Under the pieces are notes generated by a model. That model was not told where the DNA came from. It worked only from the letters and a program-made list of their open reading frames with translations, and did not search any database. 64,000 nucleotides of DNA from Tubulanus polymorphus (Eukaryota > Animalia > Nemertea), in contig NC_134030.1 of NCBI RefSeq assembly GCF_964204645.1, positions 665,355 through 729,354 of the forward strand, read 5' to 3'. How positions within the stretch are numbered: position 1 is the first letter of the stretch; every line of letters starts with the position of its first letter. Positions 1 through 23,300 of the stretch are shown here, piece by piece. Position numbers and translations under genes: made by a program.

Positions 1-620
1 TGACTTCTACGATGATGAGACTTAATCGAATTTGAATTTATTCCTAATTAGCATAATTTATACATAACAGCTACTACCCTCTATTTTCAAATTACAAATT
101 GAAATAAGCGTGATTTATTAGAAAATAGTTATCACTTACCGGTGTAGAAGAACCGCTCGGCGGCGTTGTTGGTAAAAACTGAAAATACAATCAAAGACAA
201 TGTTAAAAACCTGATCTGATTTGTATAGTGTAAGTAAATGGTTTTGGGGTCGGACCAAATTTCTGTAAATGTGAGTGAAATCAATCGAAGTTTGTCCGAA
301 CTGGTTTTTCAGTTTTTCTCCACTCGTCTATAACGGGCTATCAATCAATATGGTCGAAAGTGCAGAATGTTCCAGCTGATAAAAACTGGGTTCCAAAATA
401 ATCAGCCCTTTGCATGTGATGATGCGAACGATCAGGCTGGGTGCACCCTGGTATAGATTTGACGATGCAGTAATGTATGACGGACATTACCTGTCAGTAG
501 CAGAAGCAGGGTTTAATATTCTATATATATAAATTTCGGTTTCAAGCTCAAGAATGATGACTTCAAACAGGCGTTTACGATAACTTACGTCTATTCCGGA
601 CATAGAAATATTAAATTTTG

Positions 621-621
621 G

Positions 622-665
<44 letters not shown>

Positions 666-666
666 G
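621..666. repeat. (GTT)n microsatellite; reads as poly-Gln within a minus-strand micro-exon
   Basis: About 15 GTT units; the plus-strand paralogue at 16010-16075 carries (CAA)n. Confidence 0.9.
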
Positions 667-866
667 CTGCGCTGTACCCTATAAAAGAGAAAACATATTC
701 ATACAATGACAAGAAATAGGACAGACGCGAAATCAGAGTTTATCTAACAGTTTATCTCCAGGACGGATGTGGCTGTGAAATCAAACAGTTTATCTCTAGG
801 ATGGACACGTCTGTTAACTGTTGCCACTGGTTACCTCGAAAAAACCGTTCCTGATATAACTAAATA

Positions 867-1419
867 GTTTCCATAGCAACCAGACGAGGTCAAACAATGC
901 AAATTGAGAGATAATAAGGTAATGGATTCGAGGGGGCAGCAGACTACAGTAGACTCGGCCACCCTACTCGGTACCCGGTTGAAATTGCATACACATTTTC
1001 TGATCCTTAACGTAAAAATCCTAAAATTTTAAAAAGTTGGTATTCGGTTAATTAATGGTCCAAATAGAACAGAGTTAAGCGGAGTCTGCTGTATCATCAT
1101 TTTGATATTGATGCCTATAATTTTAGAGAATGTCGATATTTAATGGAACAATACATTTAGCCGATCCAGAAAAATTTCATAAACGTAATTCTAACCATTT
1201 CTTCCTTTTTTTTCATTTTATTTTTTTTTTTCATTAGTGGTGAGACGAAAATGACGTCATCGACTCACTACCATCTTACGTCATGAAGCTCAAAAATAGG
1301 ATAAATGTTCTCATGTATCGCCATGGGAACGTTGGGACCCATAATTGGTGCCACTACCTAAACGTTACTGTTGCCATGGATACCACAAAGAAACTTAAAT
1401 AAATAGTTTCCATAGCGAC
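867..1419. promoter_or_regulatory. Cluster of RFX X-box-like motifs
   Basis: GTTTCCATAGCAAC at 867-880, GTTGCCATGGATAC at 1370-1383 and GTTTCCATAGCGAC at 1406-1419 match the X-box consensus GTTNCCAT(A/G)GNAAC. Confidence 0.5.
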
Positions 1420-1670
1420 CAGACAATGTTAAACAATGCAAATTTAGAATGGAGAGAAATGAGGCTATGGGTTGGGCAACAACTAGCAGCGCATACAGTA
1501 ACTAATCACGATTCAATACAATATTTTTATTCTTATATCTTTACTTTTAGAGAATATCGATATTTTACTAAACGATGCATTGAGCAGAAATCCAGAGAGA
1601 TCCAGAAATATTTCACCAACGTTATATTCAATATTTTTTTTTCTTTTTTTTCATTCTAGATGCAATTCAG

Positions 1671-1777
1671 GGCCTAGTTTCACAAACAGGTTTAACTCTT
1701 AAATCGATTTAATTTCTTCATTAATTCAGTTTATCTTAAATCGATTAAGGCGTTTATCCTTTTTGTGAAACTGGACC
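1671..1777. mobile_element. PIF/Harbinger-type MITE
   Basis: Imperfect TIR GGCCTAGTTTCACAAA / TTTGTGAAACTGGACC with CAG on both flanks; a truncated inverted copy lies at about 12685-12727. Confidence 0.6.
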
Positions 1778-1974
1778 CAGGGGTACAAAATACTAAGTAT
1801 GGGATGAATAAATTAGCATGGAAGCAGTAAATTTGTACTTACTTTATTATACGGGCTTGAATGTGAGGGGCCCGCACCCCGTGTTTTTTTTACAGCTTTT
1901 GGCATCTAGAAAAACAAGTAAAAATATTAAATCATTTGAAAATATATCAGTCAGTCTTATTCTGGTTCAGTGAA

Positions 1975-3070
1975 CTAATTCTCTATATGGTGCATGTAGG
2001 GGTCCAGGGACACCACATCCACTAATTCTCTATATGGTGCATGTAGGGGTCCAGGGACACCACATCCACTAATTCTCTATATGGTGCATGTAGGGGTCCA
2101 GGGACACCACATCCACTAATTCTCTATATGATGCATGTAGGGGTCCAGGGACACCACATCCACTAATTCTCTATATGATGCATGTAGGGGTCCAGGGACA
2201 CCACATCCACTAATTCTCTATATGGTGCATGTAGGGGTCCAGGGACACCACATCCACTAATTCTCTATATGGTGCATGTAGGGGTCCAGGGACACCACAT
2301 CCACTAATTCTCTATATGGTGCATGTAGGGGTCCAGGGACACCACATCCACTAATTCTCTATATGGTGCATGTAGGGGTCCAGGGACACCACATCCACTA
2401 ATTCTCTATATGGTGCATGTAGGGGTCCAGGGACACCACATCCACTAATTCTCTATATGGTGCATGTAGGGGTCCAGGGACACCACATCCACTAATTCTC
2501 TATATGGTGCATGTAGGGGTCCAGGGACACCACATCCACTAATTCTCTATATGGTACATGTAGGGGTCCAGGGACACCACATCCACTAATTCTCTATATG
2601 GTGCATGTAGGGGTCCAGGGACACCACATCCACTAATTCTCTATATGATGCATGTAGGGGTCCAGGGACACCACATCCACTAATTCTCTATATGGTGCAT
2701 GTAGGGGTCCAGGGACACCACATCCACTAATTCTCTATATGGTGCATGTAGGGGTCCAGGGACACCACATCCACTAATTCTCTATATGGTGCATGTAGGG
2801 GTCCAGGGACACCACATCCACTAATTCTCAATATGGTGCATGTAGGGGTCCAGGGACACCACATCCACTAATTCTCTATATGGTACATGTAGGGGTCCAG
2901 GGACACCACATCCACTAATTCTCTATATGGTGCATGTAGGGGTCCAGGGACACCACATCCACTAATTCTCTATATGGTGCATGTAGGGGTCCAGGGACAC
3001 CACATCCACTAATTCTCTATATGGTGCATGTAGGGGTCCAGGGACACCACATCCACTAATTCTCTATATG
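1975..3070. repeat. 47-bp minisatellite, about 23 copies
   Basis: Unit CTAATTCTCTATATGGTGCATGTAGGGGTCCAGGGACACCACATCCA, highly homogeneous. Confidence 0.97.
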
Positions 3071-3127
3071 AAACTTGAAGGCAACTGGGATTGCAAATCT
3101 TGATATGATGATTGACAAAAACACAAA

Positions 3128-3546
3128 GACAGCGATCTAACCCAAAAACAGCGATCTTACACAAAAACAGCGATCTTACACAAAATAGCGATCTAACCTA
3201 AAAACACCAATCTAACACAAAAACAGCTTTCTAACCCAAAAACAGCGACCTAACAAAAAACTGCGATCTAACCTAAAACAGCGATCCAACCTAAAACAGC
3301 GATCTAACAAAAAACTGCGATCTAACAGAAAAACAGTGTTCTAACCCAAAAACTGCAATCTAACCTAAACACTGCGGTCTAACCCAAAAACAGCGATCTA
3401 ACACAAAAACTGTGATCTAACACAAAAAGTGATCTAACACAAAACAGCAATCTAACCAAAAACGGTGATCTAACCTCAAAACAGCGATCTAACCTAAAAA
3501 CTGCGATCTTACCTAAAAACTGCGATCTTACCCAAAAACAGCGATT
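3128..3546. repeat. Degenerate 19-21-bp tandem repeat
   Basis: Unit approximately ACAGCGATCTAACCCAAAA. Confidence 0.9.
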
Positions 3547-4234
3547 GAAAAGGTGATTTCATATTCACATTTTGATTATCTATAATATCGTGAAATGATG
3601 AATTCATTAATTTGATTCAATTGAATTAATTTTTAAGTCGGCATTTTAGACAAAATGAAAATCAAACATCTCCATCCTAAATTCTTCTTAATTTTAATTT
3701 TGGTTGAGAAAACCAATTGATTTCAGTGATTTATATCTTCAAATTCCAAATAAGAAAATCAACTCTGCCATTGGGCCGCAATCGAAGTCCGGATCCGTCG
3801 TTTAGCATTCGTGTTTTTCAAAAATTCAAACGTTTCGAATCACTATGATCATCAAAAATTGTTTTTGAATCGAATCCATGATGAGTCAATAGTTAGGTAA
3901 CTATTGCTGGATTTAAAAACAGTCAGTTTGAGGTAGGTTGATGATGTTTGAAGGGCTGAAATGGACGCTCAATACCTCGGTCTCTAAATAAGGGATAAAA
4001 ATTAACCTTATATGTGCACTTTCGAGCTAAACTACTATGACACCTAATCATTGTCTACAAGAGCTGTGCTAAAGTAATCATTTAAAGTCAATCGATCATT
4101 TATAGAGGCCTTAGTTTTGAGTTTTTTTACACTACAATTTTTGATCAAAGATGTAAAATATACTTACGTCGTAATGTCTGTGAAACGAATGATTCGATCA
4201 GCTGACAGCTGGTCATCGTTCAGTAAACCGCACT

Positions 4235-4335
4235 GACCTCAACCAATCAACACGCGGCTTAATACATTTAACATTCAAACTACTTGTATGCAAATCACAA
4301 ACGCGGAAGTAAGTGGACCGGAAGAAAGTGGCGAA
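4235..4335 (+). promoter_or_regulatory. Possible Pol II promoter (CCAAT box plus two ETS-like sites, CpG-enriched)
   Basis: AACCAATCA near 4241, GCGGAAGT near 4303 and ACCGGAAG near 4317. Confidence 0.3.
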
Positions 4336-7300
4336 CGATTCTACGGATCAGTCTTCTGAACCGACGGCATCACATAAATCAGTTTTCACCTATTCTAAAA
4401 CCGGTATTAGATTTTATCAGATTTACTATTAATACTTTGGTTAATATGGCTGTCATTTTAATAAGATAATTCAAAATTCAAAGTAAAATGAATATCTCCG
4501 TTCATAATTTTTCAGAAATGATTTTTCATCGTAGACTGGTTGCCCGTTCATTCCCGCGCAATGAACATTGTCAGTTAGACTGGTTACCGGGCTCTATCAG
4601 GCTACTGAATTGACGACTTCGCACATCGGTTTTCACTAATGCAAATTGTTGAGCTTTGGCAGATTTATCTTATGAAGATAATAAAAATTTTGTAGTCAAT
4701 ATGAGAAAATATTTCAGAATCTGATATGAAATGAATATTTCCGTCAACCATATTTCAGTAATGGTTTTTCAATGTAGACGGATCGTGAGGTGGCTAGACT
4801 GGTTACCGGTCTCTATGGGACAAGCAACCAGTCTATGCTCCGACTCACCTACCAGTGTATGGAATACCTCCACTCCGGCGTTCGATTGCCAGGGCACGGA
4901 ATCTTGCCCGCATTTATACAATTCTTTTCATGCACGCCGCGCTTTATTATGCAAGTTATTAGATGTTGTATGCTGTAGTACAGTGAACTCTGAAGGTTTA
5001 GTTTGGGCTATTCACGCGATCACGCCCCGCCAAAGAGTTATCCCTGCAGACTAATCATCGTAAACCAGAGAAGCGTTCCGGTATCCATTTTTGAGGATAC
5101 ATCTTCACGTGTCGGGGTTTGATTGCCTCCCACCGATCCAAGCCAACACGAACCCTGCGGCTAGTGCAGATCACTCTTTGGTCTTCTGTTCTTCGGCCTC
5201 GTCGAACTGAATTCAGTTTGTCCGGATTTCTAATAGTGACGCATGCAAGAAGTGAGGAAAAGAGGCATCCGAAAACTCCATAGACTCCTGAAGTTAAAGA
5301 CATAGGGTTCAGTTAATGCCTTTCTACTTGATGTTTCTAGAAGATACGGAAAGGACCAAAACTCAAAATCCCCACTAAAACAGGGATGTATTTAATATGG
5401 TTTCATCGTTTCATCATTTGAAGTGAACGTAAACAGCTTGAAAATAAAAACTACCACGAAAATATATCTTAAACTAAATTCAATTTCAACACGATTATTT
5501 GTTTACATCAATTTCACCCAGCGGCGTTTGTTATCGAACTGTGACTGAGTTTATATTCATTATCAGATCTGAAATAGTTCCCGTTATAGCTGCACAGAAA
5601 AACGAGTCTATCATGATGTTCCAACTACTCAACTACTGTGGCATGCGAGTAATAAATTCACTTTTCCGATACATATCGATTAAGGGGCAGCACTAGACGG
5701 TTCAAGATTTTAGACAGCTCGCTATGATTCTACTCTGGCAAGCGAGCTATAAGTTAGTTCACAGATTTACCGCTATTGATTTGTTTAGGGGCAGCACCTG
5801 ACGGTTAAGACATTGAAGAGCTCTGTATCTTGCTGTGGCACGCGAGATTCAGCTCCCTGGGTCCAGTTCTACAGTTCAGAGTCGATTCATTTTCAATGGG
5901 TCGACAGAGAACTAGATCGCTCACAACTTGAAAAGAAATATATACTAGTTATTGATGACAAATTCGAAAATTCCCAAAAAATAAGTCATACAAATTAAGT
6001 AGTTCAATGAATTAATTATATATGCAAAATTTTCAATGAATCCCATCACATATCTTCACTTTTATCTTTTTCTGATGATCTGGGCTCAATTGCACAGTGG
6101 TGACCTATATAATAATACTGTTCCATCCTATAGCTGTTGGAATCGCTAGTGAACTTATGGTCTCAGATAAGACTGGTGATCTTAAATCGAAGACTTGGCA
6201 CTCCGACCATTTTCTGAGGATCCGGTTGTTAAAAACTCTCGCATTAAAACAGTCTGAGGAGGAACTTGTATAGAAGAGGAATTCCACGAAGAAATTTCCA
6301 CCAGAGAAAGCTGAGAAAACCAAAATATTTTTTAAAAAACTTGACAATGACCAAGTAATATATATATATATGACAAACTAGTTTTATTAGAAGGCTTGTT
6401 GGCCGTTTGAAGTTGAATCATATGTTTTTTTAGAAACATCAATATATTAGAAAACATTTTTTCTAACATGGCAAAGTATAAAAAACATGATCTTTGAATT
6501 GTTCAACACTTGTTACAACACTTGTATAAACAGGCTCAAAGTTTTCTGAGCTAAAAACTCCCCATAACTGAATGTTTCAATAGCACACAAGTTATTCAAT
6601 TTTTTACAATTTTTGATACAAAAAATGATAACATTTGAATTTTGATTTATCCCAGAAATCAAAATTTAACATAAATTTCTCAATAAAAGGACAATAATGT
6701 AGTCACTGTAGTTACATTGATTATAATGTTGACGACTTGTGATTAAACCAAATTACGTTATCTGAAGTAAACTGAATACTAATTGAGACTTCAAAATAGA
6801 GATGACTTCAATAATGTGACGACTTATCCAAATGATGACTTACACACTTAGTGAATTGAATTAGAAATACAAATTGAGACTAAAAAATAGAGATGACTTC
6901 AGTAATGTTTTTTTTTTCTATATCTCGTTCGTATGATGATCACCTAGAGTCGAATACAGGAATTCGGAATGGAGAATAAGTGCGCATTAATCATCCAACT
7001 CTTTCTTCCCTTCTCTTTCTTCCCTTCCCTTCTCTTTCTTCCCTTCCCTTCTCTTTCTTCCCTTCCTTTCTCTTTCTTCCCTTCCTTTCTTGTTTACGTT
7101 TCCCTGAAAATACATTATATATTTCACATGTATGATTAAAATTGAATATATAAATGCTGCAATGAAAGATAATGAGAATTGCATAAACATGAAGAATTCA
7201 TTTCAATCTGAAATAATAAACCCCTAAAATTAATTTAGGAATTATTTTATGAAACTGATCACTGATTCATAAAAATGTTAATTCTTAATTTAATCTTTTA

Positions 7301-10300
7301 TTTTTATTTTTGAATCAGGGCCCAGGGATGAGTGTTTAGCGTTTGTAGGTTTTCTACCTGTGAGTAGTGGATGTACATTCACTCCGATGGATAAAATGGG
7401 GATCTTAAAGTATATCTCTGTTCATGCAGATTTCATCCGTCTCAATGCACATTTCGTCCCAGTCTCAATGCAGATTTTCATGAACCATTTCCGGCGTGAA
7501 ACTGAAATTAGAATAATGAAATTTCAGATGAAGAAGTTAAACGATTAAAAGAACAACTATAGCATAACAGACACTATCTGCAAAACATGTAAACCAGATA
7601 AAATAGCAGCAGCGGTTAGCTGCTAGGCAGTGGGGATCAAAGGTAATCAGGAGGAAAGGGAAGGGATATGTAGGAAGCAGGCGAGGGGGATGTTGGTTAA
7701 AGAGACATTCTTAACCATTAAAGAAACACTCTGAGTCCATGTTCTGACGATATATAGAGAATCAAATGCTAATAATACAAGAAAGAATGACCTGAAAAAG
7801 TTTCTGAAAAGTTACCTTGTAGCTAATGATATATCGATAGTTCTCTTTTGAAAGATGGTGGGAAACCAAGAGAAACCGAAAAGTACCAGTTGCGGTCGTC
7901 GTGGCTCCGCAGGGAGGAGGAGCAAGAGTGGTCCCGGCGGATGGTGCGGCTGACGAAGGTAATCGGGAGGAAGGGGAGGGGATAAATAGGAAGCGGCCGA
8001 GGAGGGATGGTGGTGGGGCTGGAGATGGTGCGGGTCCTGCTCCTCCTGCTCCTCCATCCGTATCTTGGGCGGTCACTCGTCAAAAAGCTGGCGAGTGATC
8101 GAGTGGCCCGAGAGGTAGAGGTGGTGGCCCGGCATACTGATGGAGAGTGGAGGGTGCCACTTCGTTCGGGGACAATTCCGGATTTGTTAACTGATCTAAA
8201 GAATATTCTTTCAGTGAAGGGATATGCCTTGAACGCATGAGACGTTCATGTGCGCCTACTATGCCTTCACTGAAAAAAATTTAAATATAACATATACCCA
8301 AATGAATAACACACAACAGTTTCAACAACATTCTACACTTTTTAGTTTGTTCTTAGCAAGATATTTTACAAGTGAATCTACCAATGATTTATCTGATCCG
8401 CAGTTGTGTGCTTTAGTTGCACTTGGACTCAGTTGCGCGCATTTAGATTAGCCTCGGGATCCAGTTCCATGAGTTTAATAGTGAAGGACTCACATAGGTG
8501 TATTATACGCACATAGGTGTATTATACTAAATACTTATTGTTCATTTTTTTCTCTTTACAGACACGACCACCGCCAAAAAAAACTCGCACGAAAAGGAAA
8601 AGAAAAGTTGCGGTCGTCGTGGCTCCTCAGGGAGGGGAGGCAAGAGTTGCCCCTGCGGATGGCGCAGCTGATCAAGGCAATCAGGAGGAAGGGGTAAGAA
8701 TTAATAGGAAGAGGCCGAGGAGGGATGGTGGTGGGGCTGGGGATGGTGCGGGTCCTGCTCCTCCATCCGTATCTCGGGCGGTCACTCGTTCACTCGCCCA
8801 AAAAGCTGGCGAGTGATCGAGTTGCCCGAGTGGTAGAGGTGGTGGCCCGGCATACTGATGGAGAGTGGAGGGAGCCACTTCGTTCGGGGACAATTCCGGA
8901 TTTGTTTTGATGTGCCTAATATGCCTTTACTGTAAAAGAATTTTAACATATACCAATGAATAAACGCATGACAGTTTCTAGTTTTTGATCATCTAAAATG
9001 TACAAAAGAGAAGCCAATCAGCGAATCAGAGAAAGTAGACCTCAGCAGTGAGGGGAACAAGTCAGAGCTCCGCTCTCGGTTCTACAGAGCTTTTGAAAAT
9101 ATAATGTCAAAACCTTTTGGGCAGAGGCTGCTTGTGAGCCGACTGTTCCTGGATTGATAGAGCTCCCTCTACATGCATGCTTAAACCACCAGCAAATCAA
9201 AACAAACAAACCACAACAAACATGGAAAAGTGGTTCAGAGAATAAATCCGAGTAATGAGGATCAAGGAAGTTATGGTGGGACAGGAAGACACTGAGTGAT
9301 TCATGAATGTGTCTACCTACATGCAACTACTTTGTTCTTGAATTCCTGAAGAAAAAAATCAAGACAACCAACAAACTCAAGACTGACCCATAGCTGCTGC
9401 TGCTGAAATAACCAACAAACTCAAGACTGACCCATAGCTGCTGCTGCTGAAATAACCAACAAACTCAAGACTGACCCATAGCTGCTGCTGCTGAAACAAC
9501 CAACAAACTCAAGACTGACCCATAGCTGCTGCAACAACCAACAAACTCAAGACTGACCCAGCTGCTGCAACAATCAACAAACTCAAGACAGACCCATAGC
9601 TGCTGCAACAACCAACAAACTCAAGACAGACCTACCCATAGTTGCTGCCACAAACAAAGAAAACAATGCCAAAAGCCATGAAAAAATGTGGGGCGCCGGC
9701 CTGTATGCTGGTAACTACAAATTTACTCTTTTCATGCTAATTTATTCATACTATGCTTAAGAATAAGTGTAAGAAAGTACTGAACTGTATGACTGACTTA
9801 ATTATAAAATGTATTTTCAAATGATTAAATAGTTATACATATTTTACTAGATACCAATAAGGCAGGTTTCAAGCCAATACAATCTGGGAGAGATGTTAAG
9901 CATTAACCATTCAAGTATGCTAAAAGCAAACAAAACACATGGGACGCCAGCCCATCCACATTACGAATTATGCCAAAAGCCATCAGAAAAACCTCGGGCG
10001 CGGGCCCCTCAACGTCAAGCCCTTACGCTAATAGAACACAACAACAACAACAACAACAACAACAACGACCTTTTGATGTCAAATCTATACCAGGGTGCAC
10101 CCAGGCAGATCGTTCACATCATCACATGCAAAGGGCTGATTATTTTGGAACCCAGTTTTTATCAGCTGGAACATTCTGCACATTCGACCATATTGATTGA
10201 TAGCCCGTTATAGACGAGTGGAGAAAAACTGAAAAACCAGTTCGGACAAACTTCGATTGATTTCTTGTTTCTTGTTCAATAGTGACATATTGCAATAGAA

Positions 10301-12061
10301 AACGTGAAGCAGTGAACAGTAGAACTACAACCGTTTATTATAGTCAAAGTGGCTCCATCTGAAATGTTACCTCATGGTAAACAAAAGGGAATTTCAATGA
10401 GTTTAACTCACATTTACAGAGTTTTAACGAGGTTAGACTGAATTAACCATTATTCCATCAATGGTGTGTTCTGTCCATCAAGGCTCCTCAGACGCACCGA
10501 GCAGTCAAATGCAGCAGTAGCGCGAGGGTCGGGTGTTCTCGTGTGGGCAGACGGTCCGAACCCCAAAACCATTTACTTACACTATACAAATCAGATCAGG
10601 TTTTTAACATTGTCTTTGATTGTATTTTCAGTTTTTGCCAAAAACGCCGCCCAGCGGGGTTTCGACACCGGTTTATCGCCTACTACGCCGGTAAGTGTCC
10701 ATCAAGGCTCCTCAGACGCACCGAGCAGTCATATGCAGCAGTAGCGCGAGGGTCGGGTGTTCTCGTGTGGGCAGACGGTCCGAACCCCAAAACCATTCAC
10801 TTACACTATACAAATCAGATCAGGATTTTAACATTGTCTTCGATTGTATTTTCAGTTTTTGCCGACAACGCCGTCCAGCGGTTTACCGCCACTGCCACCA
10901 GTTTACCGCCTACTACGCCGGTAAGTGATAACTTTTTTCTAATAAATCACGCTTATTTCAATTTGTAATTTGAAAATAGAGGGTAGTAGCTGTTTTGCAT
11001 AAATTACGCTAATTAGGAATAAATTCAAATTCGATTAAGTATCATCATCGTAGAAGTAATATATCAATGATGCCATCTCTACAGTTGTCATTTCCATTCA
11101 TGAATATCCATCTAATAATTTGTTTTATTTTTACAGGTTTTTTCACCAATCCAGCACGACAGCGATATCTATTTCAAGTTCAAACTAATTAATTTTTTTT
11201 ATCTCACTTGGGACTATAGTTATTGCGTTCACTTTTCATCCGTCCGTAGACGAAATCCAGTTTGCATTAATTATGCTAATTATTCACTGTCACGTCACAC
11301 AATCCTTACACAAATATAAGTAATAAATACATATATAAGACTGATACACGTAACAAAGAGTTCAGCAGGTGCCGTGTGATATCGTTAAACCAATTATTGG
11401 TTAAACGACAAAGTTTGGAATCTCTGGATGCTCAAACAGTAAATCTCATCAGGAAATCATAGATAACGAATAATTGTACAATTTAACTGCTGAATAAAAA
11501 TAATTTCAATTACTGAAGTTACATTGAAATCATACTTCAGTAAAATCAGGCGCCCCCTGTTGGAATGATATTCATAGCCGTAGCATCGAAACCATTCGAC
11601 TTGTTGTTTAATGTATTTCTCTCTATTTTTATTTTACAGTGATGAACATATTAGACGAATGTCCGTTCGAGGATTTGGTGGGGGAATTCAAAAGAAACTT
11701 GGTTCCCGATAGGATACCACCACCGCTTAATCCTTTGTCGCCCGCTGCTGCCCCTCCCCCACGCCCAATAAATTCGCCTCAGCAGCGGCCTGTCAGACAG
11801 CCGCCCCCGGGTGCCAAAAGATGGTCAGAAAGAGTCCGTGGGCGGCTGTTTGAAGGAGATCTGACGGAGGTAAGAATCTTTATTTGTTTTCATATTTCAT
11901 TAAACTAAGATGATTTAAACTGTAGCTAAGAAAATCTTATTTGGATTGAAATCATTGATTATGCACTTGTGAATTACAGTTTTCAATCTGTAATTAGTCA
12001 GAATTCAGGATATCAGTTGATTTTCAGCAAGAAGGGTGAAAGCGCCCGGGCCCAACAACTA

Positions 12062-12487
12062 AGTGGATGTGGTGTCCCTGGACCCCTACATGCACCATAT
12101 AGAGAATTAGTGGATGTGGTGTTCCTGGACCCCTACATGCACCATATAGAGAATTAGTGGATGTGGTGTCCCTGGACCCCTACATGCATCATATAGAGAA
12201 TTAGTGGATGTGGTGTCCCTGGACCCCTACATGCACCATATAGAGAATTAGTGGATGTGGTGTCCCTGGACCCCTACATGCACCATATAGAGAATTAGTG
12301 GATGTGGTGTCCCTGGACCCCTACATGCACCATATAGAGAATTAGTGGATGTGGTGTCCCTGGACCCCTACATGCATCATATAGAGAATTAGTGGATGTG
12401 GTGTTCCTGGACCCCTACATGTACCATATAGAGAATTAGTGGATGTGGTGTTCCTGGACCCCTACATGCACCATATAAAGAATTAGT
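12062..12487. repeat. Same 47-bp minisatellite in inverted orientation, about 9 copies (about 2 more at 19661-19771)
   Basis: Reverse complement of the 1975-3070 unit with the same flanking sequence. Confidence 0.95.
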
Positions 12488-14522
12488 TCACTGAACCAGA
12501 ATAAGACTGACTGATATATTTTCAAATGATTTAATATTTTTACTTGTTTTTCTAGAAGATGCCTAAAGCTGTAAAAAAAACACGGGGCGCGGGGCCCTCA
12601 ACATCGAGCCCCTATAATAAAGTAAGTACAAATTTACTGCTTCCATGCTTATTTATTCATCCCATACTTAGTATTTTGTACCCCTGGGTCCAGTTTCACA
12701 AAAAGGATTAACGCCTAAATCGATTTAATATTTTTACTTGTTTTTCTAGATTATGCCTAAAGCAATGAAAAAAAACACAGGGCGCGGGTCCAAGTACATC
12801 AAGCCCGTATGCAAAAAGAACCGAACAACAACAACAACAACAACAACAACGGTTCAATATTTCTATGTCCGGAATTGAGTTTTTGCCAAAAACGCCTGTT
12901 TGAAGTCATCATTCTTGAGCTTGAAACTGAAATTTATATATATAGAATATTAAACCCTGCTTCTGCTACTGACAGGTAATGTCCGTCATACATTACTGCA
13001 TCGTCAAATCTATACCAGGGTGCACCCAGGCAGATCGTTCGCATCATCACATGCAAAGGGCTGATTATTTTGGAACCCAGTTTTTATCAGCTGGAACATT
13101 CTGCACTTTCGACCATATTGATTGATAGCCCGTTATAGACGAGTGGAGAAAAACTGAAAAACCAGTTCGGACAAACTTCGATTGATTTGACTCACATTTA
13201 CAGAAATTTGGTCCGACCCCAAAACCATTTACTTACACTATACAAATAAGATCAGGTTTTTAACATTGTCTTTGATTGTATTTTCAGTTTTTGCCAAAAA
13301 CGCCACCCAGTGGTGTTTCTACGCCGGTAAGTGATAACTATTTTCTAATAAATCAGGCTTATTTCAATTTGTAATTTGAAAATAGAGGGTAGTAGCTGTT
13401 TTGCATAAATTATGCTAATTAGGAATAAATTCAAATTCGATTAAGTCTCATCATCGTAGAAGTAATATATCAATGATGCTATCTCTACAGTTGTCATTTC
13501 CATTCATGAATATCCATCTAATAATTTGTTTTATTTTATTTTTACAGGTTTTTTCACCAATCCAGCACGACAGCTATATCTATTTCAAGTTCAAACTAAT
13601 TAATTTTTTTAATCTCACTTGGGACTATAGTTATTGCGTTCACTTTTCATCCGTCCGTAGACGAAATCCAGTTTGCATTAATTATGCTAATTATTCACTG
13701 TCACGTCACACAATCCTTACACAAATATAAGTAATAAATACATATATAAGACTGATACACGTAACAAAGAGTTCAGCAGGTGCCGTGTGATATCGTTAAA
13801 CCAATTATTGGTAAAACGACAAAGTTTGGAATCTCTGGATGCTCAAACAGTAAATCTCATCAGGAAATCATAGATAACGAATAATTGTGCAATTTAACTG
13901 CTGAATAAAAATAATTTCAATTACTGAAGTTACATTGAAATCATACTTCAGTAAAATCAGGCGCCCCCTGTTGGAATAATATTCATAGCCGTAGCATCGA
14001 AACCATTCGACTTGTTGTTTAATGTATTTCTCTCTATTTTTATTTTACAGTGATGAACATATTAGACGAATGTCCGTTTGGGGACTTGGTGAGGGAATTC
14101 AAAAGAAACTTGGTTCCCGATAGGATACCACCACCGGTTAATCCTTTGTCGCCCGCTGCTGCCCCTCCCCCACGTCCAATAAAAATGCCTCAGCAGCGGC
14201 CTATCAGACAGCCGCCCCCGGGTGCCAAAAGATGGTCAGAAAGAGTCCGTGGTAAACAAAAGGGAATTTCAATGAGCGAGGGCACCCTCACGTCCAGTAC
14301 AAACGATGGTGCTAGTACAAATTTACTGCGTCCATGCTAATTTATTCATACCAAATCAAAACAAACAAACCACAACAAACATGGAAAAGTGGTTCAGAGA
14401 ATAAATCCGAGTAATGAGGATCAAGGAAGTTATGGTGGGACAGGAAGACACTGAGTGATTCATGAATGTGTCTACCTACATGCGACTACTTTGTTCTTGA
14501 ATTCCTATAGAAAAAAATCAAG

Positions 14523-15752
14523 ACAACCAACAAACTCAAGACTGACCCATAGCTGCTGCTGCTGAAACAACCAACAAACTCAAGACTGACCCATAGCTGC
14601 TGCTGCTGAAATAACCAACAAACTCAAGACTGACCCATAGCTGCTGAAACAACCAACAAACTCAAGACTGACCCATAGCTGCTGCTGCTGAAATAACCAA
14701 CAAACTCAAGACTGACCCATAGCTGCTGAAACAACCAACAAACTCAAGACTGACCCATAGCTGCTGCTGCTGAAACAATCAACAAACTCAAGACTGACCC
14801 ATAGCTGCTGCTGCTGAAACAACCAACAAACTCAAGACTGACCCAGCTGCTGCAACAATCAACAAACTCAAGACTGACCCATAGCTGCTGCTGCTGAAAT
14901 AACCAAAAAACTCAAGACTGACCCATAGCTGCTGAAACAACCAACAAACTCAAGACTGACCCATAGCTGCTGCTGCTGAAACAATCAACAAACTCAAGAC
15001 TGACCCATAGCTGCTGCTGCTGAAACAACCAACAAACTCAAGACTGACCCATAGCTGCTGTTGCTGAAACAACCAACAAACTCAAGACTGACCCAGCTGC
15101 TGCAACAATCAACAAACTCAAGACAGACCCATAGCTGCTGCTGCTGAAACAACCAACAAACTCAAGACAGACCCAGCTGCTGCAACAACCAACAAACTCA
15201 AGACTGACCCAGCTGCTGCAACAACCAACAAACTCAAGACTGACCCATAGCTGCTGCTGAAACAACCAACAAACTCAAGACTGACCCAGCTGCTGAAACA
15301 ACCAACAAACTCAAGACTGACCCATAGCTGCTGAAACAACCAACAAACTCAAGACAGACCCAGCTGCTGCAACAACCAACAAACTCAAGACTGACCCAGC
15401 TGCTGCAACAACCAACAAACTCAAGACTGACCCATAGCTGCTGCTGAAACAACCAACAAACTCAAGACTGACCCAGCTGCTGAAACAACCAACAAACTCA
15501 AGACTGACCCATAGCTGCTGAAACAACCAACAAACTCAAGACTGACCCAGCTGCTGCAACAATCAACAAACTCAAGACTGACCCATAGCTGCTGCTGCTG
15601 AAATAACCAACAAACTCAAGACTGACCCATAGCTGCTGAAACAACCAACAAACTCAAGACTGACCCATAGCTGCTGCTGCTGAAACAATCAACAAACTCA
15701 AGACTGACCCATAGCTGCTGCTGCTGAAACAACCAACAACCTCAAGACAGAC
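14523..15752. repeat. Variable-length (about 34-43 bp) minisatellite with internal (CTG)n; shorter array at 9361-9650
   Basis: Unit CAACCAACAAACTCAAGACTGACCC(AT)AG(CTG)n(A)AA. Confidence 0.95.
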
Positions 15753-18075
15753 CCCCTCGAATCCATTACCTTATTATCTCTCAATTTGCATTGTTTGACC
15801 TCGTCTGGTTGCTATGGAAACTATTTAGTTATATCAGGAACGGTTTTTTCGAGGTAACCAGTGGCAACATTTAACAGGCGTGTCCGTCCTAGAGATAAAC
15901 TGTCTGATTTCACAGCCACATCCGTCCTGGAGATAAACTGTTAGATAAACTCTGATTTCGCATCCGTCCTATTTCTTGTCATTGTATGAATATGTTTTCT
16001 CTTTTATAGGGTACAGCGCAGCAACAACAACAACAACAACAACAACGGTTCAATATTTCGATGTCCGGAATTGACGTAAGTTATCGTAAACGCCTGTTTG
16101 AAGTCATCATTCTTGAGCTTGAAACCGAAATTTATATATATATATAGAATATTAAACCCTGCTTCTGCTACTGACAGGTAATGTCCGTCATACATTACTG
16201 CATCGTCAAATCTATACCAGGGTGCACCCAGGCAGATCGTTCGCATCATCACATGCAAAGGGCTGATTATTTTGGAACCCAGTTTTTATCAGCTGGAACA
16301 TTCTGCACTTTCGACCATATTGATTGATAGCCCGTTATAGACGAGTGGAGAAAAACTGAAAAACCAGTTCGGACAAACTTCGATTGATTTCTTGTTTCTT
16401 GTTCAATAGTGACATATTGCAATAGAAAACCTGAAGCAGTGAACAGTAGAACTACAACCGTTTATTATAGTCAAAGTGGCTCCATCTGAAATGTTACCTC
16501 ATGGTAAACAAAAGGGAATTTCAATGAGCGAGGGCACCCTCACGTCCAGTACAAACGATGGTGCTAGTACAAATTTACTGCTTTCATGCTAATTTATTCA
16601 TACCATGATTACCATGATTACCACAATCTGATATATAATTTATTTTCAAATGATTTTATAGTTTTACTTATTTTTCTAGATAATGCCGAAAGCAGTGAAA
16701 AAAACGTGGGGTGCGGGCCCTCAACATCAAGCCCGTATCCTACTGTTAGTACAAATTTACTGTTTCCATGCTAATTTATTCATGATTAAGAATAGTTGTA
16801 AGAAAGTACTGAACTGTTTGACTGGCTCGATATATGATATATTTTCAATTTATTCATGATTAAGAATAGTTGTTAGAAAGTACTGAACTGTTTGACTGGC
16901 TCGATATATGATATATTTTCATATTATTATATATTATAACTAATGTTTTTAGATGTCAAAAGCCACCAAAAAGGCACCCAGCGGACAAGGGGGTCCCTCT
17001 ACATCAAGTCCATATGCACCTGTGAGTACAAATTCATCGCTTCATGCTAATTTATTAACTAATGAACGTTACAATAAAAATGTTGAAAATTTAATTTTTA
17101 ATGAAATTGACTAATATATTTATATTATTTTTTAATTTCTAGCGTCTCTACTTTGGGTCGCCAGGCCGATCGCCACCTCTGAATTCGGATAACAACAACA
17201 GCAGCAGCAGAAGCGCATCTCTTCCGCCAGAGACGCCTCCCGACTTCCAAGCGCGAAGTAAGTTCAGTCTTCAAATACAATTTCAACGCATTCAATTTTT
17301 TGTATGGAGCTAAAACGGTTAAAGTTGTGACCAGTTTTCATAACTCTGTGTCGGGGGCCGCTAACCAAAACAAATTTTGAAAATGTGCCCATCAATCAAA
17401 TTGCCTCTGGGCGATTTCTATTGATATAACGAAGGTTTTGATTAAATGAACAAATTTCAATATTTGTAAGTTTAACATTTCTGTTTTTAATTTTTCTTTG
17501 CGAGGAACTGAATTTTCGAACCCCCCGAACCGCCTCAAGCTACGTTCCTGATATAGTGCTAGCTATACCTGAATATTTTTTTCTTATTAAAATTGTTTAA
17601 AAAACCAGCACCTTGAACTTAGCAACGTTAATGAATTTGACTAATGTATTTTTTTATTTTCATTTCTAGCGTCGGTTTGCCTCGCAGGCAAGGTCACCGC
17701 TGCTAAATGTAAGTATCAGTGACGCCCTCAATCTCACATGCCTCACTTCCCTCGTACGTGCCGGTTTTTATGAAATTCCTCACGGAAATATATACTAGTA
17801 ATCTTAGAATACACGTTTTTCTACCCAGACCCCTTCATTCTACTGAACTACCGTATAATAAGTGCCTGTTGTGTTCATTTTCTGTTGCATTTATTTTTAT
17901 ATTATTTCCATTTACAGTCGGTGAATCACAGCAGCAGCAGCAGCAGCAGCAGCGCACCCCTCCGGAGACGCCTGTTTCTAATCGGTCAAATAACAACAGC
18001 AACAGCAGCAGCAGCAGCAGCAGCAGCGCACCCCTCCGGAGACGCCTGTTTCTAATCTGTCAAATAACAACAACA

Positions 18076-18106
<31 letters not shown>

Positions 18107-19370
18107 TAGCACCCCTCCAGAGACGCCTCCCGACTTTCAAGCACCAAGTAAGTTCAGTCTCCAAATACAATTTCAATGCTTTCAATTTTTTTGTATGTAG
18201 TTAAAAGTTGTGACCAGTTTTCATAACTCTGTGTCGGGGGCCCGCTAACCAAAACAAATTTTGAAAATGTGCCCATCAATTAAATTGCCTCTGGGAGATT
18301 CCTATTGGAGGAGCGGCTTCGTTCGGGGACAATTCCGGATTTGTTAACTGATCTAAAGAATATTCTTTCAGTGAAGGGATATGCCTTGAACGCATGAGTC
18401 GTTCATGTGCGCCTAATATGCCTTCACTGAAAAAAAATCAACTATAACATGTACCACATATTTTTTGATTTAATTTTAGTCCAATTCCACAATTATTTCG
18501 GCTTACAATAGTGTCTTCAATTCTTTAAAGCCCAAAGCACCTTTTTGACTCAACATTCGGTATGAAGGTGGCCGGGAATTGGGCCGGCCTGTTTTCTTTC
18601 CGTTTCTGTCTCACGCCCAGCATAATTCATTTATATCATGCTTAAGAATAAGGCAAGTAAAAGTACTTAACTGTATGAGAGGCTAGATATATTTTCAAAT
18701 GATTTAATATTTTTACTTTTTCTATATGCCTAAAGCTGCAAAAACGCCCAGTGGGCGAGGGCACCCTCACGTCCAGTACAAATGGTGCTAGAACAAATTT
18801 ACTGCGTCCATGCTAATTTATTCATACCATGATTACCATGATTACCACAATCTGATATATTATGTATTTTCGAATGATTTTATAGTTTTACTTATTTTTC
18901 TAGATAATGCCGAAAGCAGTGAAAAAAACGTGGGGTGCGGGCCCTCAACATCAAGCCCGTATCCTACTGTTAGTACAAATTTACTGTTTCCATGCTAATT
19001 TATTCATGATTAAGAATAGTTGTTAGAAAGTACTGAACTGTTTGACTGGCTCGATATATGATATATTTTCAATTTATTTAATATTATTACTAATTTTTTT
19101 AGATATCAAAAGCCACGAAAAAGGCACCCAGCGGACAAGGGCGTCCCTCAACATCAAGCCCATATGCTCCTGTAATTATAAATTCTTTGCTTTCATGCTA
19201 ATTTTTTAATTAATGAACGTCATAATAAAAATGTCGAATGAAATTGACTATTTATATTATTTTCATTTCAAGTGTCTGTCTTTTGGCTCACTAGCGAGAT
19301 CGCCGCCTCTCAATTCAAACAGTCACAACTAAAAAGATCTTATTTGGATTAAAATCATTGATTATTGCAC

Positions 19371-19660
19371 TCTGTTTGTCCTGTGGTACGACGTTAAACT
19401 GCCTCTTTTTAACAATACGTTTTATCCATACATTTTATCAGTGATTTTTATCTGTTTGTCCTGTGGTATGACGTTAAACTGCCTCTTTTTAACAATACGT
19501 TTTATCAATACATTTTATCAGTGATTTTTATCTGTTTGTCCTGTGGTATGACGTTAAACTGCCTCTTTTTAACAATACGTTTTATCCATACATTTTATCA
19601 GTGATTTTTATCTATTTGTCCTGTGGTACGACGTTAAACTGCCTCTTTTTAACAATACGT
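19371..19660. repeat. 80-bp tandem repeat, about 3.6 copies
   Basis: Units start at 19371, 19451, 19531 and 19611. Confidence 0.92.
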
Positions 19661-22600
19661 GTCCCTGGACCCCTACATGCACCATATAGAGTGGACCCCT
19701 ACATGCACCATATAGAGAATTAGTGAATGTGGTGTCCCTGGACCCCTACATGCACCATATAGAGAATTAGTTCACTGAACCAGAATAAGACTGACTGATA
19801 TATTTTCAAATGATTTAATATTTTTACTTGTTTTTCTAGAAGATGCCTAAAGCAACAAGAAAAACACGGGGCGCGGGCCCCTCACATTCAAGCCCGTATA
19901 ATAAAGTAAGTACAAATTTACTGCTTCCATGCTTATTTATTCATACCATGCTTAAGAATAGTTGTAAGAAAGTACTGAACTGTTTGACTGGCTCGATTAT
20001 ATGATGTATCTTCAATTTATTTAATACTTTTACTTTAAATTTTTCTATTAATATCATTATATCATAGTTATTTTACTAGATGCCGAAAGCTCAGAGAAAA
20101 ACAGGGGGCGCAGAAGCTTCAACTTCCAGCCCGACCTCCAGCCCATAAGCTGCTGCAATTACAAATGTACTGCTTCCATGCTAATTATTCATACCATGCA
20201 TTACAACAATGCCTAAAGCAATTAGAAAAACCTGGGCCGCGGGCCCCTCAAGTTCCAGCCCGTATGCTACTGTAAGTACACATTTACTGTTTCCATGCTA
20301 ATTTATTCATGATTAAGAATAGTTGTAAGAAAGTACTGAACTGTTTGACTGCCTCGATTATATGATGTATCTTCAATTTATTCAATACTTTTACTTTAAA
20401 TTTTTCTATTAATATCATTATATCATAGTTATCTTACTAGATGCCGAAAGCTCAGAGAAAAACAGGGGGGGCAGACCCTTCGACTTCAAGCGGCTAAGCT
20501 GCTGCAATTACAAATGTACTGTTTTCATGCTAATTTATTCATACTTTGTTAAGAATAAGTGTAAGAAAGCATTGAACTGTTTGACGGACTCATTATAAAA
20601 TGTATTTTCAAATGATTTTTACTTATTTTTCTAGATGCCAAAAGCAGGTTTCAAGCCAATGCAATCTGCAATCTGTTTATAGAAAAGCCAAAGATTCAGA
20701 TTTTAAATGAATTTTTATCTGTTGATCACCTGAAACGCCACTTTTCTCAAGGGAGGGACATTTAGGATTGACCTCTGAATGAACCCTGTCTGTTGATATC
20801 TTACGTAAATGGGTTAGAAAAATACAAATCCTTATTTGGGAACTGGACACACTTAGGTTCAGTTACATAATTCTATGGATTCAGTTCATCTCATTAAAAC
20901 AAACAGCTCTTATTCAAACTAGTTTTGTCAAGCAGGAACACTTGCTTTTAGAATTCGTCGTGCGTTCCGGCGGGAGGAGTTTGTACGTTTATTTCTACCG
21001 AAGTGTAAGTAGTTTAACTATTTTCATACAATATCATTTAGTGTGACGTGTGTCACTGATAATCAAAATCTAATAATAACTGTTGTTCCCTAGTATTAAC
21101 ATTGTGCAATTGAAATCCTATAGTTGTTTTTAGAAAGGATAGATGGCGCCATCAATGTGACAATCGATTGTAAAGTTTAAGAAATGAATGTTTAACCTCG
21201 CCGAGTACCAGAATTCTTAACCGTAGCATCGAAACCATTCGACTTGTTGTTTAATGTATTTCTCCCTATTTTTATTTTACAGTCATCAACATTTTAGACG
21301 AATGTCCGTTCGGGGAATTGGTGGAGGAATTTAAAAGAAACTTGGTTCCCGATAGGATATTACCACCACCTTTGTCGCCCGCTGCTGCCCCTCCCCAAAA
21401 TCGGATTAATACGCCTCAGCAGCGGCCTATCAGATAGCTGCACACCAGATAGAATGGGAGGGCAATTACCTAAAATTACCTTAGCAATGTTAGATTAAAG
21501 CGTGCAATGACTACTGGTGATAATAAGGAATCAAACTAATATGCTGTCAATAGTTTGAGCAAAAGTCACATTTCAAGCAACACATGCTAATGACACACAC
21601 ACAAGTGAAATCGATATATCGAGTGTTCAGACACAAGACGGTAGTTTCCAGCAAGAATTATCCGTTAAAACCAAATGATAACAGAGTGAAATTATCCTTT
21701 CATTTCCAAGAACAGCATCCAAATTGGAAAATTTCACAATTTATATATTTTTGACATTATAGAAGGGGCACGGACCCATCCAGATCAAGTATTAACATCA
21801 AGCCTTTCAACTATTCCAAAAGGCTTTCCCAGTGACATCATCATTGAGAAACCAGGTCAAGCTATGATTACTAGTTTTGCTCATTTTCACGCAGTACTTC
21901 TCAACGGCTAAGAGCTGATGGACGAAACTTTTCAAATTAATTCCAAAACCTCGAGCAAGAGAAAAGGATCGGACAGCAGTTGTAGTGAGGGAACAAGTGG
22001 ACCTCGGCCGCCAAAAAAGAATGCAGATTCAGAGGTACAACATACATTTCAATTACGATGATAATGAGATATCAGCTGTGTTTATCCAACTACAATCTGC
22101 GTCACAGAATGCAAGACAGGACAGCATCAGAAGAAAAGACGAGCGGTTCCTCTATCTCCCCTCTCCGTCTAACAATCCCGCTTACAACCACCATTTATCC
22201 ACTAAAAGTATTTTTTGTCAAATTTTTGTCACTTCGATTGATGATTCAATGAATATTTCCAAGAATTCAGATACAAGTGCTATATTTTCTGAATCCAAGA
22301 ATTTCTTTCCAAATAAGACAATTATTATTATCAAATTGACGAAGGCCAACGTGTTTTCTTTAAATAAAAGGCAGCGGCAAAAAGAAGAAAGTGACACCAG
22401 TGAAAATACTAAGATTTTGCACAATTGTTGCTATTTAATAAATCCCAGAATTGAGGTAGTTGAATAACCATAAAAATTGAGATAACGATATATGATATGA
22501 TATATGTAAATATGGTAAATCTAATTTTGAAATGAGTAAATGAATTATGATATATCTTTAACTAACGTTTTTGGGATGTTTTGCCCTAGTTTGTTAATGA

Positions 22601-23300
22601 AGATTTGTATGTTTATAAATACTAGTATGATATTCATTTCAAGTCAATTGCTATATTATACCTGATGATTAAAATAAATATAAGTTATATATATATATCC
22701 AGTTTCCCAAAAAGTCTGAACAAAACTTTTTTGTGAAAGCAGGACTAGATTTACTTATCTATTTTATTATTTATTTCATTATTTTTTTCTAAATTTTCTG
22801 TTTAACTTTTTCGATGTTAATTAGGGTCGAAAAATCACTCCCATTACAACAATGTAATTATTTTCAATCAATTTTAACATTTTTTTATAAATGAAAACCT
22901 TTTGAACCAATGAATTTCTAATTAAGTCTAAATATGTAAGTTTTTGATTCACAATTTATCACGATAGAGAATACCTGAATGCGGTGTGTAAATCGGTGAT
23001 GGACTTTACATTAAAACATTCAAAAACTGCAGAAACGCCTGAACAACAAGAACAAATTAATCTAACATCGTAATATGCTTGATACAGCAATTTAACCCTG
23101 TTTTTTGCTAGCAATCAGAAAAATATGGGGGCGACACTTGAACAGAAAAATAACCACATACTACAACAGAAACACCTGAAGAGATGATGGGAAGTTTGAA
23201 AACATCTCAAGACCTGTACTCCAAAAATATTGTAGTTTAATAATAAATATATCTCTACTTATCTTTTCCATTCAGTGATTCCCAATTCAGGTCAGTCCCT

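Follow-up and report, generated by a model that had tools for sequence, protein, structure and literature searches.

MPKA cassettes in a satellite-rich region of Tubulanus polymorphus are first exons of a tandemly amplified orphan gene, with probable pseudogene debris co-amplified alongside

In the protocadherin and UGT1A clusters, each variable first exon has its own promoter, lacks a splice acceptor and is spliced to constant exons located downstream. The products of the schistosome micro-exon genes (MEGs) all have a signal peptide, and the greater part of these genes' coding sequence lies in micro-exons (PMC4350168). Here we describe a stretch of 64,000 nucleotides (nt) from the nemertean Tubulanus polymorphus (C6:665355-729354, hereafter the window; C6, C3 and C8 are contigs of the assembly, and coordinates without a contig prefix are window positions) in which a small cassette that begins with the codons for MPKA recurs many times. 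An earlier note on this DNA (the sequence-only reading) had proposed that the cassettes, together with other small modules, form a library of symmetric exons, open to skipping or shuffling without frameshift. Our analysis identifies this cassette as the first coding exon (E1) of a lineage-restricted and so far unannotated orphan gene with eight coding exons, which is present in about 34 copies. We put at roughly 0.8 the probability that the cassettes of the window are explained as E1 of this amplified gene, with the block in which they are scattered being co-amplified, rearranged debris and not a working exon library.

Genome-wide matching over the 268-Mb assembly returned at least 56 matches to the cassette and its flanks, all of which lie at 0.66-1.74 Mb on C6, 0.40-1.31 Mb on C3 and 15.6 Mb on C8. 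In the main arrays the cassette recurs every ~33-35 kb over more than 1 Mb. A 40-kb stretch of the main array (C6:1535000-1574999) served as the reference for the canonical unit, and a scan for splice sites and open frames recovered the following exons in it:

Unit 4047-4112: E1, 66 nt, the cassette itself, containing the start codon
Unit 5274-5357: E2, 84 nt, encoding polyglutamine
Unit 5768-5806: E3, 39 nt
Unit 7307-7333: E4, 27 nt
Unit 9225-9263: E5, 39 nt
Unit 9474-9555: E6, 82 nt, exit phase 1
Unit 19333-19562: E7, 230 nt, entry phase 1
Unit 20676-21068: E8, 393 nt, with the stop codon

The splice sites, exons and fusions reported in this study are all deduced from genomic sequence. Exon sizes are 63-66 nt for E1, 84-90 nt for E2, 39 nt for E3, 27 nt for E4, 39 nt for E5, 70-82 nt for E6, 230 nt for E7 and 393 nt for E8. 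Three full-length gene copies, including the one whose 5' end lies in the window, were aligned and frame-checked; all three have AG and GT at every exon and open frames of 318, 314 and 317 amino acids (aa), and E6, which measures 82, 70 and 73 nt in them, keeps phase 1 throughout. A six-frame search for E8 found 34 full-length, stop-free copies (18 on C6, 10 on C3 and 6 on C8), 19 of which are identical in protein. The sequence-only reading was therefore correct in taking these modules for true exons of a modular family of micro-exon genes, overlooked by open reading frame (ORF) scanning, and the intact parent locus for which it suggested a genome-wide look exists as eight-exon genes in the arrays. 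The library of skippable or shuffleable exons finds no support, since each canonical gene has exactly one MPKA exon, followed by E2-E8 in fixed order. The symmetry claimed for the exons holds for E1-E5, which are all phase 0 at both ends, and fails for E6 (phase 0 to 1) and E7 (phase 1 to 0).

That E1 is maintained as coding sequence is indicated by the codon-aware comparison which the same reading had called for. The 19 cassettes with canonical flanks comprise 15 distinct sequences and 10 distinct peptides, with a synonymous divergence (dS) of 0.37, a nonsynonymous divergence (dN) of 0.069 and a dN/dS of 0.19. Diversity at codon positions 1, 2 and 3 is 0.05, 0.08 and 0.22, so that substitutions are not even across codon positions and the reported third-position bias is real. 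This bias and the low dN/dS together indicate that E1 is under purifying selection as a coding exon. The cassettes do lie among satellites of 47, 44, 80 and 19 bp, and their flanks are repeated with them, as would be expected of a complex satellite or of exon fragments carried by a transposon without any gene. Such an explanation is refuted by the 34-copy, eight-exon genes with their open full-length copies, and with the E1 dN/dS and the confinement of the copies to three array regions also speaking against it, we give it practically no chance. The suggested carrier transposon is ruled out because every copy lies within those three regions.

An intact copy of the gene enters the window from the left. 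The minus strand of positions 1-3070 matches the canonical unit at 98% identity, and the following features were identified in this part and just beyond it:

1843-1905, minus: E1, the MPKA cassette, 63 nt, with AG acceptor, ATG and GTAAGT donor; the gene runs leftwards beyond the window
589-678, minus: E2, polyglutamine, 90 nt, AG and GTAAGT, phase 0 at both ends
140-178, minus: E3, FLPTTPPSGSSTP, 39 nt, AG and GTAAGT, with 39 of 39 nt covered
1974-3070, no strand: 47-bp satellite with 23 copies; every canonical unit has it immediately upstream of E1
3120-3545, no strand: 19-bp satellite, belonging to the canonical unit
~4168-4250, minus: putative non-coding first exon (E0) with a GTAAGT donor, 5' limit undefined

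The module at 140-178 that had been described as an inverted paralogue is thus E3 of this minus-strand gene. Exons E4-E8 of the copy lie at C6:650729-665354, where its E8 (C6:650729-651118) is 100% identical in protein to the canonical E8, and the joined E1-E8 frame is open over 317 aa. The 47-bp and 19-bp satellites presumably sit in an intron between the putative E0 and E1. An in-frame stop shortly before the E0 donor makes the ATG of E1 the likely start codon. Other blocks (e.g. at ~1725 kb on C6) also contain a piece related to the putative E0, which has both an acceptor and a donor and lies downstream of an E1 cassette.

Two further observations concern the arrays themselves. The canonical-array copy at C6:1382856-1386035 has a 1-nt deletion in E1 (frame MPKAVKKTRAWGPQHLAPII), and thus not every array copy is intact. 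In addition, a reduced form of the block, about 6 kb upstream of the following gene and in head-to-head orientation to it, is part of every canonical unit. The one at C6:1565615-1566713 (unit 30615-31713, minus strand) contains an E8 fragment, the 47-bp satellite and one E1, which is truncated just past the point where E1 and E2 join without an intron. The units may go back to a divergent gene pair.

The cassette is present at all 16 of the sites that had been listed for it, with ATG at 1905 (minus strand), 9666, 9917, 9970, 12559, 12753, 16683, 16953, 18726, 18907, 19103 (where ATA stands instead), 19843, 20080, 20209, 20441 and 20635; the copy at 9917 was confirmed by direct reading of the sequence. 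A degenerate 23-nt motif gave 11 matches against the 0.03 expected from shuffled sequences. The best copies (1905 on the minus strand, 12559, 16953 and 19843) have the structure ascribed to them: a pyrimidine tract ending in AG, then 0 or 3 nt, ATG CCN AAA GCN, and finally AGC CCN TAT NNN NNN before a GTAAGT or GTGAGT donor, with a length of 63-69 nt. As had been stated, the spacer between AG and ATG is AAG, ATT, ATA or absent. The other modules pointed out as AG/GT-flanked multiples of three are true exons as well, being E3 (13288-13326), E2 (16010-16075) and E5 (17670-17708). What had been understated is the decay. It had been said to affect several copies, while acceptor, ATG, open frame and donor are all kept in only 4 of the 16, namely the best copies just named. 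The cassette at 20209 has ATG, open frame and donor without an acceptor, and the remainder show frameshifts, stops, lost splice sites or fusion to other exons.

Apart from the E1 of the intact gene, these cassettes belong to a block with the following contents:

~8000-26125, plus: scrambled pseudogene block, ~18 kb, with exon fragments out of order
7863-8224, plus: fragment of the last exon E8, frame broken
8562-8906, plus: E8 copy with acceptor, truncated at its 3' end
9364-9657, no strand: 44-bp satellite; a second, larger array lies at 14523-15754
9666-9710, plus: E1 remnant with an internal deletion, no acceptor and a weak donor
9849-10069, plus: three E1-like cassettes (9849, 9917, 9970) and the start of E2, intronless, followed by a jump into intron 2
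10632-10670, plus: E3 copy, donor lost
10856-10920, plus: E3 copy expanded to 65 nt, out of frame
11137-11158 and 13548-13569, plus: E4 remnants, the former without a donor
11640-11869, plus: E7 copy, 230 nt, AG and GTAAGA, frame open, stranded without E5, E6 or a downstream E8
12556-12621, plus: intact E1 with canonical flanks, preceded by the 47-bp satellite (12062-12487)
12750-12893, plus: frameshifted E1 with E2 and the first 17 nt of E3, intronless, then breaking off into intron 2 where 7 nt of microhomology (AAACGCC) are found
13288-13326, plus: E3, FLPKTPPSGVSTP, AG and GTAAGT
14051-14252, plus: E7 copy, truncated (202 of 230 nt)
16010-16075, plus: E2, GTAQ9RFNISMSGID, AG and GTAAGT
16680-16744, plus, with a duplicate at 18904-18968: E1 frameshifted by a 1-nt deletion, donor GTTAGT, the lesion occurring in 7 of 7 blocks
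16953-17021, plus: E1b variant, MSKATKKAPSGQGGPSTSSPYAP, 69 nt, AG and GTGAGT, a type limited to blocks
17144-17258, plus: fused E5E6, 115 nt, intron 5 absent, phase kept
17670-17708, plus: E5, RRFASQARSPLLN, AG and GTAAGT
17918-18147, plus: E6, expanded by a 74-bp internal tandem repeat
18307-18459, plus: E8 tail with 3' flank, no acceptor
18726-18790, plus: E1 remnant with an in-frame stop, no acceptor
19103-19171, plus: E1b remnant, ATA replacing ATG, GTAATT donor
19840-19905, plus: intact E1 with canonical flanks, open in every block, with 0-19 of 66 nt differing between blocks
20080-20148, plus: E1 remnant with an in-frame stop, no donor
20209-20271, plus: E1 with open frame and GTAAGT donor, no AG acceptor
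20441-20497, plus: E1 remnant with a stop and a poly-G tract whose length varies between blocks
20635-20680, plus: truncated E1 remnant with a stop
21283-21441, plus: E7 remnant, 165 of 230 nt, with an in-frame stop

Read from left to right, the first part of the block holds two E8 pieces, E1 remnants, E3, E3, E4, E7, E1, the fused E1-E2-partial E3, E3, E4 and E7, and the second part holds E2, E1, E1b, fused E5E6, E5, E6, the E8 tail, three E1, an E5-like piece, five E1 and the E7 remnant. The E6 copy at 17918-18147 contains 2.6 copies of its 74-bp unit, itself with a polyserine CAG run and an 'APLRRR' segment, and is an exon growing by internal tandem duplication.

It could be supposed that the E1 copies of the block are nevertheless a functional array, used as alternative or serially included exons of one transcription unit that would give rise to variable or repeated N-termini. 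They measure 63-69 nt, are in phase 0 and in many cases are flanked by AG and GT, no block has lost the open frame of cassette 19840, and the intronless string at 9849-10069, also found in other blocks, could trace back to a multi-cassette mRNA. This remains a very unlikely explanation, as 12 of the 16 cassettes lack a splice site or an open frame and their lesions are conserved. Furthermore, the exons located further downstream on their strand are out of order or truncated, with no complete E8 following the cassettes on that strand in the window block, and canonical genes use a single E1. The block and the neighbouring intact gene stand head-to-head on opposite strands, so that the block cassettes cannot splice into that gene. 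As in the protocadherin and UGT1A clusters, many similar 5' coding exons lie in tandem; unlike those clusters, the cassettes here have acceptors, most of them are broken, and no intact E2-E8 series lies downstream.

The history of the blocks also argues for debris. There are seven of them on C6; the other six, at about 1036, 1233, 1333, 1490, 1617 and 1717 kb on the minus strand, are colinear with the window block and 94-99% identical to it, with indels between copies, and the blocks separate groups of 2-5 canonical genes. All seven share the same cassette types, order and lesions, among them the 1-nt deletion giving MPKAVKKTWGAGPQHQARIL and the stop codons that terminate MPKAGFKPMQSAICL and MPKAQRKTGGAEASTSSPTSSP, which shows that the decay preceded the amplification. 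The sequence-only reading had itself allowed that part of the region may be a graveyard, and these shared lesions in scrambled fragments bear it out. A genome-wide search for a parent locus of the short form with E1b and fused E5E6 matched blocks only, which implies that no intact parent of this form exists elsewhere. The history of the locus is probably the following. Amplification of the gene gave about 34 copies, in tandem units of ~34 kb spread over three contigs; in the block, E1 with short flanks was duplicated locally many times and the other exons were displaced; some block exons were fused by precise intron loss; and the block, already broken, was co-amplified seven times with the array. 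Its cassettes are therefore mostly pseudo-exons and no splice library for any gene.

Several points weigh against this reading of the locus. Both the expression of the family and the silence of the block cassettes are argued from genomic DNA only. Three block cassettes (12556, 16953 and 19840) are fully intact, the last being open in 7 of 7 blocks, and some transcription or use of the intact cassettes is possible. The blocks are young (1-5% divergence), and their shared lesions date the decay and do not prove a present lack of function. A gene with several working E1 exons could exist at the array loci of C3, where 3-5 E1 matches lie in tandem at about 539 and 654 kb, or of C8 (15.1-16.3 Mb).

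Silent donor templates are known from the chicken pseudo-V genes and from antigenic-variation archives, and broken cassettes might serve a working family in the same way, being copied into the active E1 by gene conversion. The E1 of canonical genes is indeed mosaic, all four gametes being present at 67 of 136 site pairs, and its near-identical flanks would favour short conversion tracts. The broken cassettes, however, have distinct flanks, with 10-30 of 50 nt unlike the canonical ones, and differ between blocks by 0-2 per ~65 nt, no more than their own flanks do; with so little variation they are not involved in exchange. Variants diagnostic of them (e.g. TWGAGPQ and APSGQGG) occur in 0 of 19 canonical-type E1 copies. 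Only the cassettes with canonical flanks vary (12559 and 19843), at 7-19 of 66 nt versus 3-8 of 300 in the flanks, and the apparent excess between blocks at 9666 and 20441 is due to indels. We therefore rejected the donor library, which we hold to be very unlikely, on the invariance of the broken cassettes and the absence of their variants from gene copies. Given these absent variants and distinct flanks, the broken cassettes are neither spliced alternatives of a working gene nor conversion donors.

The debris reading leaves the most unusual property of the family on the side of the intact genes. Among nine canonical genes of C6 and C3, diversity is 0.12 in E1 (16 of 63 sites variable), 0.014 in intron 1 (46 of 1158 sites) and 0.005 in the 147 nt upstream of E1, a difference between exon and intron of about 9-fold (Fisher p = 1.7e-8). 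In the three full genes the fraction of variable sites is 0.185 in E1, 0.154 in E3 and 0.103 in E5, compared with 0.011-0.019 in introns, 0.017 in E7 and 0.018 in E8; E1, E3 and E5 thus vary about ten times as much as introns, and E7 and E8 do not. The excess in E1 begins at the first base past the acceptor AG, including the 3-nt leader, and ends at codon 18. The four-gamete pattern within these 63 nt points to exchange between variants or to recurrent mutation. CpG decay was rejected as the cause of the E1 variation, since many variable sites are transversions with three or four alleles. E1, E3 and E5 are islands of old, mostly silent divergence within nearly identical introns.

Homogenised introns with persisting exon differences are also the pattern at the loci of the major histocompatibility complex. 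In the primate L/M opsin genes, gene conversion homogenises introns while exon differences persist (PMC3213168). The Tubulanus family resembles the opsin genes in that introns of paralogues are more alike than particular exons and exon haplotypes are mosaic; it differs in its ~34 copies, in islands that are micro-exons of 39-66 nt, and in an excess that is mainly silent. The pattern is best read as the result of gene conversion and unequal exchange, which would homogenise the units while old exon variants persist. We think it doubtful, though conceivable, that a process confined to spliced sequence has diversified the micro-exons or preserved their diversity. Such a process is suggested by an excess that starts after the acceptor AG and ends inside the exon, by its mostly silent nature (dS of 0.37 versus 0.014 in the intron) and mosaic structure within 63 nt, and by the repeated precise loss of introns in the family. 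Two forms of it may fit, namely exchange of exons between distant paralogues by way of RNA or cDNA, and selection on the mature mRNA. An example of the latter may be escape from small RNAs made by the inverted, partly intronless blocks, in a conflict like that of Stellate with Su(Ste) or of Dox with Nmy.

In Drosophila, amplified families are restrained by small RNAs in the systems Su(Ste)/Stellate and Nmy/Dox. The blocks could similarly be a source of regulatory RNA, if their inverted, partly intronless fragments were transcribed, possibly by read-through from the preceding array gene, into antisense or small RNAs restraining the amplified family; the exon-limited divergence would then be escape from such RNAs. 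The blocks of the main array are opposite in strand to the genes and lie between groups of 2-5 of them, they contain intronless fragments, and the divergence excess of the genes starts right after the acceptor AG, including the leader and silent sites. Yet no hairpin-forming inverted repeats were found inside the block, and fragments of E7 and E8 are also present there while E7 and E8 of the genes are not hypervariable. We consider this role of the blocks distinctly improbable.

Fused exons also occur in other blocks. In the C6 blocks at ~1036 and 1233 kb, E1 and E2 form a single open exon of 150 nt with a normal acceptor and the normal donor of intron 2, and in those at ~1490 and 1717 kb E1, E2 and E3 are fused and followed by a normal intron 3. 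The E1E2, E1E2E3 and E5E6 fusions join exactly at the predicted junctions, and the exit phase of E5E6 is that of E5 plus E6. Such precise fusions give independent, indirect support for the contiguity of E1-E2-E3 and E5-E6 in a mature transcript in the predicted frame. Reverse transcriptase (RT)-mediated intron loss and processed pseudogene fragments are the result of a known process, and the fused exons are best explained by intron loss through a spliced RNA or cDNA intermediate. They resemble RT-mediated loss in being joined exactly at splice junctions with neighbouring introns retained, and one breakpoint has 7 nt of microhomology. Unlike RT-mediated retrocopies, the loss affects 5' and internal introns in partial copies inside the array, and there was no sign of a full-length retrocopy, of a poly(A) tail or of a target-site duplication. 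Loss rather than gain would be the direction of the change, given that intron gain is usually rare; among the paralogues compared, which included no outgroup, it is the fused forms that have diverged more.

The predicted protein is of low complexity, rich in S, G, P, Q and R, with many S/T-P sites and two basic runs in E8 resembling nuclear localization signals. Its earlier description as a basic, disordered protein finds support, in that it is basic, of low complexity and probably disordered. The open frame was checked on the joined protein, and homology searches were made with single exons. No Pfam family was found for E7 or E8, phmmer with E8 gave 0 matches among 1.84 billion protein representatives, the ESM Atlas gave no usable match, and matches to PDB sequences were at chance level (E of 0.04 or worse). 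AlphaFold2 run on E8 alone gave a mean predicted local distance difference test (pLDDT) score of 57.5, with a C-terminal helical segment predicted at low confidence. By its composition, the product could be a nuclear, phospho-regulated protein. The final 65 residues of E8 have distant matches, at 43-45% identity, inside open frames of 155-232 aa, including C11:2084878, C11:2952655, C9:1581253, C11:2003135 and C8:13961557. The predicted helical C-terminal segment may be a domain common to another gene family or a mobile element.

Set against the schistosome MEGs, to which the cassettes had been likened, the family agrees in architecture: it has a run of very small, symmetric phase-0 exons (E1-E5, 27-90 nt) and is multi-copy, lineage-restricted and invisible to ORF scanning. 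The likeness fails in two respects that define the MEGs above, the signal peptide and the share of micro-exons in the coding sequence. By inspection, without a predictor, the N-terminus MPKAxKKTRGAGPS is basic and has no hydrophobic stretch of the kind found in a signal peptide. E1-E6 provide only ~337 of 957 coding nt (~35%), the C-terminal two thirds coming from the ordinary exons E7 and E8, and E6 and E7 are asymmetric.

A closer parallel is found in ampliconic arrays, with which the family shares ~34-kb units over more than 1 Mb, near-identical non-coding DNA and interspersed, rearranged partial copies. It differs in an exon-limited divergence ~10 times that of introns, which is not usual in such arrays, and in a protein without known relatives. 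Several full-length open copies lie in tandem units, and the partial copies have disabling lesions and a rearranged order. The object belongs to a familiar kind, that of an orphan gene amplified in tandem together with its pseudogene debris, and the window itself adds no evidence for a new system of splicing or diversification. For annotation, correct models are needed both of ~34 real, unannotated genes and of seven pseudogene blocks that mimic an exon library, and neither should be masked as satellite. What is of interest lies at the level of the family, in the divergence limited to exons and in the series of intron losses. Its micro-exons offer a clean natural case of divergence ~10 times that of introns under purifying selection, and its precise intron losses form a graded series, making the family useful for studying gene conversion, selection and RNA-mediated recombination in tandem gene arrays.

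Elsewhere in the window, two long open frames of 898 and 465 aa on the minus strand (47588-52377) form an NLR-type gene, with Pfam matches to an NWD1-like winged helix, to NACHT/AAA_16 and to a WD40 beta-propeller of the NWD2 C-terminal type. The 5' end of this gene is bordered by a tandem repeat of 27 bp at 52438-53075. Related C-rich satellites of 21-24 bp, with the consensus CATTCCCCTCACCCACCTACACAG and variants of it, are located at 36174-36330, 46431-46550 and 60840-61355.

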